DNA of 64,000 nt from Oikopleura dioica (lineage: Eukaryota; Animalia; Chordata), in the NCBI GenBank assembly GCA_907165135.1, contig OU015566.1, positions 12,276,001 through 12,340,000 on the forward strand, given 5' to 3'. Numbering within the stretch: position 1 is the first letter of the stretch; every line of letters begins with the position of its first letter. The notes below the pieces were generated by a model. That model saw nothing but the letters and a program-made list of their open reading frames with translations, searched no databases and was not told the origin of the DNA. Made by a program: the position numbers and the translations under genes. This document shows, one piece after another, positions 9,998 through 42,731 of the stretch.

Positions 9998-10013
9998 CTG
10001 AAATCAAGGAAGA
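9998..10013 (+). repeat. Dispersed motif YTGAAATCAASGAAGA, copy 1 (between GALNT7 and PAM16)
   Basis: CTGAAATCAAGGAAGA read directly. Confidence 0.9.
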
Positions 10014-10320
10014 GAATTTCTCATAAATCTCTTTCTCCATTCGTATATTTTTTCATGTCGCTAAAATGTGTTAAAAGCTGTTAAAAAGCCTAAAAATAGA
10101 TTCAAAGCCTACAAGATTATCTTCTGTATCGAGTATTTTATGATTCAAAGTCAAGTGTTTTACACGGGCATTTCTATTTCAACATAGAAGTGTCCGAAAT
10201 TCGCCTTCAAGCTCCTGTATTGTTCTTTCAAATAAAAAATATTCTGTTACTGCTTAGTCGGTGCAATAAACTTTCATTAATAAAACAAGTGTTTGACTTC
10301 GTTACAGTTTTAGTTTCAGT

Positions 10321-10862
10321 ATGACTTGGGACTCATTCAAGAGGCTCGCCATTGTCGCTCAGAAAACAGCAAAAGCATCGCTAAATGCGGCTCGAACTGC
10401 TGTGACAGAGACTTACAAGCAGAACAAGATCAGAGCTGAGGCAGCAGAGGCCCGGGAAGTAAGAATTCTCAATCTATAAAATGTTTTCTCTAATTGTTTT
10501 TAAAGAAAGAAGAAGCGGCTCAAAACAAAAACTTTTTCGAAAAAATGGGTCCCAGCCGTGAAATGTCGTTATCGGAAGCAATCGAAGTCCTTGGAATCGA
10601 AGATCAATACAAGACAGAGGAATTTACTGTCAGCCTAATTGAAGAGCGTCACGAAAAGATGATAGAAATCAATCAAAAGGGCAAAGTCGTCAGCCCGTAT
10701 TTGGTGGCGAAGATTAATAACGCTAAAGATTCTGCCATTGTGGCGGCGCTCATGGAAGCGGAAAAGAATTCTAGCGCCGCAGAAGCCGATTCCAGTCAGG
10801 AAAAAGAGAAGACTGAAGCGAAAAGTGAAAGTGAAGAGAATAAAAAATCTGAACAAAAATAA
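10321..10862 (+). CDS. PAM16: Mitochondrial import motor subunit PAM16/Tim16 (Magmas), 2 exons
   Basis: J-like domain MSLSEAIEVLGI...IEERHEKMIEINQKGKVVSPYLVAKINNAKD, matching LSLQEAQQILNV...SFYLQSKVVRAKE. Confidence 0.85.
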
Positions 10863-11004
10863 ATTATTTACGACTAATTGAAAACAAGCTAAAATTCATA
10901 AAAGAAAGCCGGATCACTCGAGCCTTGAGCCTAAATGAAAGTTTCCCACCGCCAAGTACGCCGGTGATTCTATTTAGAAAGTCCTCGAGTTGATTAAATA
11001 TTTC

Positions 11005-11465
11005 CAGGGTGGCTATTTTGGATTTGGGGGTTAGTTGGAATTGGATTGGATCCAATCCAATAAGGTTTGGATGGAATTTGGATGGCCAGGGTACCGGATT
11101 TTGTTGGGGAAAATTGGGCAATTGGGGGAAATTTGGGGAATCGGATCCAATAAAAAATATATCCCTAAACTATGCAAAGTAGGGTCATTTTCATGATGAA
11201 AATGAACAATTTCAGATAAAAAAATCATCGTTTGGCAGAGTTGATCCTCCTTTCGGATAAAAACTTACTGTTTCCTTTCTTTTTAAAGTACTAGAAGCCT
11301 TGGAAAAATTGGAAACCCAATTGGATCCAATTGGAATTGGGGATTATTGGGAAATTGGGTAAAATTGGATTGGATTGGATTTTGGATGGATAGCTTCGAC
11401 TCAAAATTTATTGGATGGAAATTGGATGGCCAGACCCCGAAATTTTGTCCAAAATAGCCACCCTG
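11005..11465. mobile_element. MITE-1: non-autonomous DNA transposon, 461 bp
   Basis: Perfect 18-bp TIR CAGGGTGGCTATTTTGGA (11005-11022) / TCCAAAATAGCCACCCTG (11448-11465); flanking direct repeat ATATTTC (10998-11004, 11466-11472); internal AATTGG/ATCCAAT repeats. Confidence 0.9.
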
Positions 11466-11535
11466 ATATTTCCCCTCATTGATTGTTTGCGATTTAGACG
11501 GACTTCGAAAAGACAAAAATGTGGTCATACAGAGA

Positions 11536-40363: not shown

Positions 40364-40622
40364 CTGTAAATTAATCTTATTTGTATAAACGTTATTTTTA
40401 TATATTCCGATGAAACTGCCTTATCTTGATTTACACGCCTAGAATATATCTTCACTCTTTTATTCCGAAAAAATAACCTAAATTGTTTCTTGTACTGTTG
40501 GAGGCTCAAAAAACTAGAGTTACTGTGAACGAAATCTTATACAATCGACTGTTCTTGTAATTATTTCTTCGCCTGTTTCTGAATGTATATTTTGACAAAA
40601 AAAAAATAAAAAGCATAAAATC

Positions 40623-40638
40623 TCTTCGTTGATTTCAA
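40623..40638 (-). repeat. Dispersed motif, copy 6 (downstream of TTC28)
   Basis: TCTTCGTTGATTTCAA on the + strand. Confidence 0.9.
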
Positions 40639-41638
40639 TCAAAATGGTTTTGATGGCCGTTAAAGGCTTGAATTAAAGTTTTAATTGAAGGAGCTGAGTA
40701 ATTCTCTAGAATAATTCTCTCCCAATATTTGCACACTCTTATCGACCGTACAGTTTCTAATCATACAGTCGCTTGGTTACTCATGCTCTGGCTCTCGAGC
40801 TGGTCCACTCTGAATTAGTGTGAATCACACACTCAATGATGCACTATTCCCTTGGCTGATCCCCTGGCCAATGGCCGGCGCGTGAGCTCGGTTGAGATCA
40901 TCTCCAGAGCACGGAGCTTCGTGGCCCTAGCGCGCGTGGGCGCACTCCTTTATTCCCGCAGCAGATCGCGCCAACTTAGTCAAGCCACCAAAAAATAGCA
41001 AGGAAATACTCACCCTAAAAGCCTTCCCCGAGCCGTAGATAGAGAACAAGGGGCCTCACAGATCGCGGAAAACGTGTATTTTTCTGTTGTTTAGCGGCGC
41101 GGACTGAGCAAACTTATTTTGTCGTTCAACGGCGCCACGGGTCAGAGCGGGTGAGAGGCTTCAGGGAGATTTTGAAAAATAAAATTATACAAAAGAGACT
41201 TTAAGAGCGATTTATTTTATGAAAGAGACTCGGTGAAAGTGAGGAAAAAGAAAATGTATGAAGACGGCAGAAAACTGAACTGGAATCGATTTTCATCAGC
41301 CACGGTTTTAAATAGTTATTGATTCAAAATAATGCCGACTTTTTGTTTGTTTTTTAAAAACAGCCTTTCTTTTGAAGGTTCTTTGCAAGTAAAAAGCAGT
41401 AAGGTTAAAATTAAGTAACTTCCGCTCACGTCAGTTTATTTCTCCTTCACGGAAAGGGTGGTCTGTCTTTCTCAAAATTCCTGAATCCTCACTAGTCTGG
41501 CCCTTAGTCAAGCCATCACTATTATCATGCCCTGTCTACATGTGACCATGTGATACCTCTATTATTTATCTTCTCTGCTTCCCATTTTACGAGTGCTCAA
41601 TCATTCAAGAGTGATTTTATTCAGAAAGAAGTTGAAAT

Positions 41639-42619
41639 ATGAATCCCGAATACGATTACCTTTTCAAACTTTTACTGATTGGAGACTCTGGCGTCGGCAA
41701 ATCATGTCTTTTACTCCGATTTTCCGATGATACTTATTCAGGTAAAACACCTTTTTCTTCAATCCTCGAATTATTGCGATAATAAAGAACATTTTTATGA
41801 ATAGAAATTGCCGTCGTTAAAATTCCGATTGACTTTTTTAAACTTTGAACTTTCAGAAAGCTATATCTCCACAATTGGTGTCGATTTCAAAATCAGAACT
41901 ATCGAATTGGATGGCAAAACCATCAAACTTCAGATTTGGGATACAGCCGGCCAGGAGCGCTTCAGGTAGGCTCGTAGAAAGTTAGAATCTCTCACCTTCC
42001 TGCCACACAAATATTTCCCCGTTTTTTCGTCAAGTTTAAATATTTGCCAATCAGTTCGATTCTCAATCCTTGTTTTTAGAACTATTACTTCTTCATACTA
42101 CCGAGGTGCTCATGGTATCATTGTTGTGTATGACGTCACTGGTAAGGGAGCCCTTTTACGACAGAAATTCTAGCTCAATATTTAGACCAGGAATCGTTTA
42201 ACAACGTCAAGCAATGGCTCCAAGAAATTGACCGATACGCTTCTGAATCTGTAAACAAACTTCTCGTCGGAAACAAATGTGATATGGTTAGTTAAAATAA
42301 TCGTAAAAGAAAGAGCCAATTGACCTTAATATCCAGACCACGAAAAAAGTCGTCGACTACACTACTGCGAAAGAATACGCCGATTCCCTTAATATCCCAT
42401 TCCTCGAAACTTCTGCTAAAAATAATACCAACGTCGAACAGGTACGACTCCAGTCTTTGATAACTCTAACACCAGTAATTTTAGGCTTTCTTAACAATGG
42501 CATCAGAAATCAAGAACAAAATGGGACCGGGCTCTGGTCCCTCGCCGTCCGGCCCAAGAGGAAATGTCGATATTGGAAAGACGAACAGTGTAGGAAACAA
42601 ATCTGGAGGTTGTTGTTGA
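41639..42619 (+). CDS. RAB1: Rab1 GTPase (small exons; missed by the ORF track)
   Basis: Spliced translation [28 protein letters not shown]...[10 protein letters not shown]...[22 protein letters not shown]...ETSAK...GGCC*. Confidence 0.97.
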
Positions 42620-42715
42620 AAATGTTGGAAAGTTATCTTCTCACTGGAAAATTAATTCCCTAAAGGCGCCGGGCTGATTGCTTTTTTGTTTTTTCTCGGT
42701 CGATAATTTTCATAT

Positions 42716-42731
42716 TTGAAATCAAGGAAGA
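42716..42731 (+). repeat. Dispersed motif, copy 7 (RAB1 3' UTR)
   Basis: TTGAAATCAAGGAAGA read directly. Confidence 0.9.

Follow-up and report, generated by a model that had tools for sequence, protein, structure and literature searches.

A dispersed 16-bp word in the genome of Oikopleura dioica as the core of a predicted, orientation-independent protein-binding site

Background

Why should a single 16-bp word recur seven times in a short stretch of chordate DNA, on either strand and in surroundings that have nothing in common? The question is raised by a 64-kb window (the whole stretch of DNA under analysis, 64,000 nucleotides) that forms part of chromosome 1 of Oikopleura dioica OKI2018_I69, in the contig labelled C4. 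A pattern search of this window with the 16-mer YTGAAATCAASGAAGA returns seven exact matches (Table 1), where 100 dinucleotide-preserving shuffles give an expectation of 0.00, and with up to two mismatches it returns nine against 0.58 expected by shuffling, the two additional matches being those at 15175 and 61841. The positions and strands of the exact copies agree with those in an earlier note on this DNA, as does the 2-mismatch copy at 15175-15190, and the chance expectation of far less than one copy per window and the lack of alignable flanks that it described are likewise borne out, the window flanks having nothing in common when they are set in register. No other dispersed 12-mer or 14-mer with at least four copies was found in the window.

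The 16-mer forms the high-information core of a longer DNA element, of ~20 bp, made up of YTGAAATCAASGAAGA and a weak V-W-A-Y tail, and we consider it probable (at roughly 0.58, judging from sequence) that this element is an orientation-independent binding site of one sequence-specific protein, held under selection with fast turnover of the individual sites. There is no description of the motif in the literature searched. Queries with the word and its reverse complement brought up only duck PCR primers and similar texts, and the motif was not found in the O. dioica promoter paper, in its supplement or in the genome-scrambling paper.

Abundance and distribution across the genome

The whole assembly contains 1000 exact copies of the word (476 forward and 524 reverse), and the reversed, uncomplemented control has 0; at up to one mismatch the counts are 2674 and 16, respectively, which corresponds to one copy per ~24 kb. 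By our own arithmetic, base composition alone leads to an expectation of ~0.4 exact copies, so that the excess is roughly 2700-fold. The exact copies divide into 835 G-variants, 113 T..C and 52 C..C copies.

The 165 C-variant copies were used to follow the distribution over the five large contigs, all of which carry them roughly by length [C1 56 (expected by length ~44), C2 22 (33), C3 5 (7.5), C4 40 (37) and C5 ~42 (41.5)], with a deficit on C2. Strong enrichment on a single chromosome, as in a dosage-compensation type of element, was looked for across these contigs and not found for these copies. The earlier suggestion of a chromosome- or domain-marking motif is not sustained, and what is left of it is regional heterogeneity and a dearth on C3. 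This 2.9-Mb contig has none of the 113 T..C copies, and its five C..C copies represent one repeat family, a scarcity of independent copies that may just follow low gene density. The last 2.2 Mb of C4, which include the window, hold 15 of the 40 C-variant copies of that contig. Over the first 5.3 Mb of C1 the spacing is near Poisson (20 gaps shorter than 10 kb against 16.1 expected, P = 0.16), so that the excess seen in the window (seven copies in 33 kb) is a local one, belonging to the distal 2.2 Mb of chromosome 1, which is rich in the motif, and does not reflect a general habit of the element.

Anatomy and degeneracy of the element

When 60 independent copies are compared, the 5' edge of the element is sharp, with the information falling to background directly before position 1, and the 3' side continues into a weak extension over positions 17-20 (not-T, A/T, A, C-rich). 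We measured tolerance by searches in which four positions at a time were freed. Positions 1, 2, 4, 5, 7, 10, 11 and 14 are soft, 5 and 7 moderately so, and positions 13, 15 and 16 are nearly fixed. Among the copies listed, the A at position 14 is replaced by G 17 times, by T six times and by C twice, and positions 13, 15 and 16 are altered 0-2 times each. Position 10 tolerates T and position 11 tolerates G, C or A, giving rise to a recurring ..CATAG.. form. Since A-to-G transitions at three neighbouring A positions would be about equally likely under neutral decay, the profile matches a recognition matrix rather than ageing inserts.

The surroundings of the copies show a dip in GC content of ~5 points that is confined to ±40 nt. 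Over these ±40-nt flanks the mean pairwise identity is 22.7 of 80 positions (~28%), and pairs of high identity are confined to three duplicated gene or repeat families. A search for a partner word or half-site near the copies was negative, and no informative column was found past position 20 within 80-150 nt downstream. A piRNA-type upstream promoter motif of the kind known as Ruby in nematodes was also considered, and neither a feature at fixed distance nor clustering in dedicated domains was found.

Conservation in North-Atlantic-type O. dioica

Protein searches supplied the comparison DNA: the Norwegian records FN654505.1 and FN653028.1, one contig of GCA_977009715.1 and, from marine metagenomes, two contigs. 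At ~70-74% identity this DNA is syntenic either with the window or with another region of the Okinawa genome; spliced models were left unjoined and every exon was searched singly. The consensus is the same in North-Atlantic-type and Okinawa DNA. The comparison covered 16 sites. Five of them keep the motif in place, a sixth carries an inverted copy at the same spot, a seventh may have a replacement nearby, and the other nine do not retain it, numbers from which the true retention rate can be read only roughly. Conservation across cryptic species, which the earlier note had named as a check, thus holds for the consensus and for five of the sites, and it fails for nine.

Ten Okinawa sites were sought in North-Atlantic-type DNA. 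The copy at 22538 is retained in contig L063 at 14/16 bases, with changes only at the soft positions 1 and 5 and with flanks that are 45% identical. The copy at 30155 is retained in both Norwegian haplotypes at 13-14/16, with one change at soft position 4 and flanks ~42% identical, and the only difference between the two haplotypes is at the degenerate position 11. The site at 40623 is unaligned in L062, where a 2-mismatch copy in the same orientation lies ~100 nt beyond the end of the same gene. The remaining sites are not retained: 9998 matches L063 at 8/16, 20299 is not kept there, the intron that holds 28909 is missing in the Norwegian gene, 42716 is absent from L062, where the alignment has a gap, and two sites on Okinawa C2 are not kept, nor is a coding copy in a golgin gene (L051), whose orthologue differs at 4/16 bases by three synonymous changes and one Lys/Gln change. 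Besides these ten, the intron around the degenerate copy at 15175 is present in L063 with the motif absent (6/16).

In the other direction, six North-Atlantic-type sites were compared with Okinawa DNA, with L126:210 left out. One intronic site is retained at 14/16, an intronic site in L111 keeps a 12-base core, and a coding site at L106:110 is kept at 15/16; L129:1802 belongs with 22538, 30155 and L106:110 to the sites that keep 13-15/16 bases, the non-coding flanks being ~42-45% identical. One coding site (L096:2198) and one non-coding site are not retained. At the intergenic site C1:5291617 both lineages have exact copies, in aligned places within ~20 nt of each other and in opposite orientation. 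Relative to their host genes, conserved sites are found in the sense as well as the antisense direction. In ~60 kb of North-Atlantic-type DNA there are five copies at up to two mismatches against ~0.55 expected at the shuffle rate of the window, a density estimate that is biased because this DNA was picked for its orthology to Okinawa regions rich in the motif. When metagenome contigs were scanned for the exact word, many hits were due to chance, and two marine samples also yielded several contigs that map to the Okinawa genome at 65-84% identity and bear exact copies, in some cases a pair of them. An assembly artefact is ruled out by the independent assemblies of other lineages and by the metagenome contigs, which have the identical word at orthologous places.

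The earlier description of a discrete, orientation-independent DNA element is upheld, and the element's properties fit a long protein-binding site: its tolerance depends on position, the strands are balanced, sites are conserved in either orientation, and one site is inverted in place between lineages. The strand balance, the conserved copies in both orientations and the inverted site also point to action at the level of DNA and not of RNA. We therefore regard it as highly improbable that the word is an RNA-level signal, such as a splicing or 3'-end signal in introns or untranslated regions, a small-RNA target, or a part of a small non-coding RNA gene. Several copies do lie in tiny introns or shortly past stop codons, and variants that begin with C read TTTCAG at the end of their reverse complement, which looks like a splice acceptor; most copies, however, begin with T and there read TTTCAA instead of CAG. 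In long open frames there is a mild sense bias (17 sense against 9 antisense copies), but it is no bigger than an A-rich coding strand would give. No Rfam match was found in the window at gathering thresholds or in the loci L208 and L106 at E ≤0.01, and the absence of a piRNA-promoter-like feature at a fixed downstream distance speaks against such a signal as well.

Repeats and mobile DNA

Some copies travel with duplicated DNA. Repeats of ~6.8 kb at the start of C1 (L001-L004; C1:4361-24950) each hold an exact copy. On C3 a tandem unit of 4.5 kb (L070/L071, C3:2811000-2830999; also L054-L058), with 99.4% identity between units, has the motif inside the coding sequence of a 494-codon frame. 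At C4:4797000-4801500 (L065) a tandem duplicate of 1.2 kb consists of copies that are only 82% identical, both of which preserve the 16-mer together with the sequence close around it, and one small paralogous gene family likewise bears the motif. In all other sampled copies the flanks are unrelated.

These cases raise the alternative that the word is a by-product of mobile DNA or of repair, that is, a transposon end, subterminus or footprint, or a short patch copied nearby in error-prone break repair. Neighbouring copies are of the same variant slightly above expectation (13 against 8.8), the rare C..C pair at 28909 and 30155 is only 1.2 kb apart, and the intron that holds 28909 is missing in the Norwegian orthologue. 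When same-variant pairs were examined, one proved to be a tandem duplication, one a repeat family and one independent. Against this alternative stand ~50 independent copies without a common flank, inverted pairs at inconsistent spacing, and the C3 repeat, in which the single copy is internal and the ends are free of the motif. Decay of inserted copies does not give so sharp a 5' edge or a tolerance so specific to position, and sites are conserved across lineages. The coding copies differ from their orthologues by substitutions, with no insertions or deletions (L051 and L096:2198 show substitutions only). The site 42716 falls opposite an alignment gap; at this divergence, alignments of non-coding DNA cannot be relied on. 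Without a common flank or terminal-repeat pairing, and with substitutions rather than insertions at the coding copies, the transposon footprint put forward earlier is not supported, and the mobile-DNA alternative as a whole, which we hold to be very unlikely, is already largely refuted here. An introner-like element finds no support among the intronic copies, which have only the 16-mer in common; of five small introns examined, four are present in both lineages, with or without the motif.

Two further features of these repeats were seen. From the start of C1 up to ~47 kb the repeats also hold ..GAAAACAAGG.. and ..CATAG.. variant copies ~360 nt apart. The 494-codon frame on C3 has no Pfam match, and no extra motif copies were found at the repeat ends; by eye it has transposase-like features, and a diverged relative lies on C5 (L066).

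Coding and non-coding settings

The earlier note had described the word as occurring in non-coding DNA only, which is correct for the window and incorrect for the genome, where copies lie in coding exons with Pfam support. One is inside the coiled coil of a GRIP-domain golgin, one within the Pfam match of a carboxypeptidase propeptide, one, in antisense, in an extracellular loop of an SLC22-like transporter, and one adjoins the EGF domain of a CUB-EGF protein. Coding copies occur in both orientations, and no fewer than four of the six reading frames are used. By a crude test that combines open-frame length with a codon score, motif sites are no different from random positions of the same loci, although the classifier discriminates weakly and the coding fractions are accordingly rough. 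A modest preference for non-coding DNA is possible and would fit the GC dip.

This setting bears on the main rival, in which the element serves chromosome maintenance in a manner that depends on density and not on nearby genes, as a sequence-specified replication origin, a cohesin or condensin loading site, or a site of pairing or of meiotic-break control. Collective selection could keep such an element, or biased gene conversion could spread it; in a variant of the same idea, a site spreading in the latter way would serve to suppress breaks. Both forms seem to us unlikely, if worth serious consideration. The distribution is nearly indifferent to coding status, spacing is near Poisson at the density given above, sites turn over quickly around a constant consensus, and independent copies are rare on C3; the L051 coding copy, with its three synonymous changes and one Lys/Gln change relative to the orthologue, can be read in the same sense. 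Coding indifference, near-random spacing and site exchangeability fit such a density-type function about as well as they fit the binding-site reading. An element of this kind, if real, would explain how perfect copies come to be written into coding exons through compatible codons, as well as the near-random spacing, the sites exchangeable between lineages and the fixed word. On the other side, the in-place conservation of several small-intron and spacer sites suggests that local position counts, and the depletion on C3 could follow low gene density. As for meiotic breaks, a PRDM9-like hotspot code should change quickly and erode its own sites, and the presence of the same motif in two old lineages speaks against it. 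A PRDM9-type hotspot motif runs counter to the constancy of the consensus between lineages and to the several orthologous sites retained, and because the word is identical in lineages with saturated silent sites we do not regard it as a fast-changing hotspot code.

A predicted binding site and the points that weigh against it

The reading of the element as the site of a DNA-binding protein draws on the degeneracy, which is shaped like a binding-site weight matrix, on the strand balance and on the retention of sites amid diverged flanks. The double-stranded DNA would be recognised by one abundant protein with a long or two-part reading head, for which a multi-zinc-finger array or a paired helix-turn-helix head are putative candidates. 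New sites would originate from near-matches by point substitution and would be kept by selection that is weak per site, which would in turn account for the fast turnover. The protein may act as a general architectural or insulating factor that splits tightly packed transcription units or sets local chromatin, rather than as a gene-specific switch, in the manner of CTCF-type factors or of the Reb1/Abf1-type factors of yeast.

Several observations count against this reading. The motif matches no transcription-factor consensus known to us. About 15-30% of sampled copies are in coding-like sequence, about as for random positions. A coding share of this size is out of the ordinary for promoter or insulator elements, and a chromosomal role that does not depend on position accounts for it no less well. 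Most sites are lineage-specific, given the nine of 16 that are not retained; two of the three coding copies compared (L051 and L096:2198) are among these nine, and the retention of the third, at L106:110, may reflect protein constraint. The near-Poisson spacing on 5.3 Mb of C1 gives no hint of regular boundaries. Finally, the excess of perfect copies (1000 exact against ~1674 with one mismatch) calls either for selection that is strong or very efficient or for a copying process of some kind.

Copies in the window and their neighbourhood

The individual copies of the window are collected in Table 1.

Table 1. Matches to the 16-mer in the 64-kb window (positions are those of the window).
Copy	Position	Strand	Setting
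Exact, C..G variant	9998..10013	+	Intergenic spacer; ~250 nt past the upstream stop, ~320 nt ahead of the next ATG
Degenerate, 2 mismatches (soft positions 2 and 5)	15175..15190	-	42-nt intron 15156-15197 of an SH3/PIX-like gene
Exact, T..G	20299..20314	+	19 nt before a splice acceptor at 20333
Exact, T..G	22538..22553	+	~125-nt intron (22491-22615) of a coiled-coil protein gene
Exact, rare C..C variant	28909..28924	+	46-nt intron 28891-28936, near the 5' end of a pancreatic-lipase-family gene
Exact, C..C	30155..30170	-	Spacer separating lipase and CAF1A-like genes
Exact, T..C	40623..40638	-	~260 nt past the stop of a TPR-CHAT (TTC28-like) gene
Exact, T..G	42716..42731	+	~100 nt past the stop codon of a Rab-type GTPase gene
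Doubtful member, 2 mismatches (less tolerant positions 8 and 12)	61841..61856	-	Overlaps a 126-codon minus-strand open frame

Short intergenic spacers hold four or five of the seven exact copies: those at 9998, 30155, 40623 and 42716 lie 100-260 nt beyond stop codons, and that at 20299 is in a 266-nt interval beyond a SUZ12-like open frame, which is possibly an intron or an intergenic outron. These positions suggest a barrier or architectural role between packed genes, a step that we infer. The earlier note had placed three copies in introns of about 45-55 nt, and only two are in tiny introns, the copy at 28909, which occupies one third of its intron, and the degenerate one at 15175. The 28909 intron, with GT..AG ends, is missing in the Norwegian lipase orthologue, where the exon is continuous, and represents a lineage-specific intron gain or loss. 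For 61841, ~0.6 matches of such quality are expected in the window by chance. An assembly gap at 12069-12095 (27 N) interrupts an exon of a membrane-protein-like gene and is more than 2 kb away from every motif copy. The North-Atlantic-type contig L063 is collinear with the sequence on either side and has ~40 nt at this place, so that the length of the gap and the reading frame across it are uncertain, and the gap is irrelevant to the motif.

The comparison between lineages also brought out features of the neighbouring DNA. In the region L208 (C1:5290215-5293604), ~100 nt from the site C1:5291617, a non-coding block of ~60 nt is near-identical between Okinawa and a North-Atlantic-type contig, and a near-identical block also occurs in L106 at ~300-400, the neighbouring DNA being ~70-75% identical or unalignable; these ~60-nt blocks have no Rfam match at E ≤0.01. 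The metagenome contig L111 is collinear with Okinawa C5:2940579-2950396 over its first 3.7 kb and inverted over the next 3.4 kb, which amounts to a small inversion between the lineages. In L096, at ~3990-4127, there is a unit of ~130 nt with more than 100 Okinawa matches at 70-79% identity, often in tandem, and this unit is a short satellite or MITE-like repeat common to both lineages.

Relation to known systems and significance

Sites of the CTCF and Su(Hw) type resemble the element: they too are solitary, 15-20 bp long and of high information, they number in the thousands, and they fall between genes, in introns and to some extent in exons, with a subset strongly conserved and the remainder turning over. 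To our knowledge the sequence itself is unlike the CTCF consensus; and close motif pairs here are without a convergent-pair bias. The sites of yeast Reb1, Abf1 and Rap1 share with it a very compact genome, in which about a thousand strong sites lie in short spacers of closely packed genes in either orientation. Sites of these general regulatory factors act as barriers, roadblocks and nucleosome organisers, and they may be the closest analogy for how the motif works, although they belong to another kingdom, have another motif and presumably an unrelated protein, and the coding share seen here seems high for such a role.

Bacterial DNA uptake sequences and Chi sites are alike in that perfect copies far above chance are spread genome-wide and written into coding sequence via compatible codons. 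They are bacterial and depend on transformation or RecBCD, whereas such a drive mechanism is not indicated for the Oikopleura motif, and we know of no eukaryotic counterpart of these words. The CENP-B box and the sites of Tc1-like transposases have a similar length (~17 bp) and a similar two-part look. The reverse complement of the ..CG.. variant presumably has a run of eight bases in common with the CENP-B box, and the forward strand resembles, we assume, part of the Sleeping Beauty transposase site. The major variant of the motif, however, lacks the CG of the CENP-B box, and no satellite or transposon context was found.

The genome of O. dioica is among the most compact and most rearranged of animals, and the motif bears on the question of how this organism keeps tightly packed genes apart and organised. 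It offers a concrete handle for the purpose, as a probe for pull-down, as a coordinate set to be overlaid on accessibility, CAGE and Hi-C maps, and through named sites such as 22538, 30155 and C1:5291617. If the word is bound by an architectural or barrier protein, it would reveal a chromatin organiser of the O. dioica genome, and if it is instead an origin or a pairing site, it would be far more unusual for an animal.

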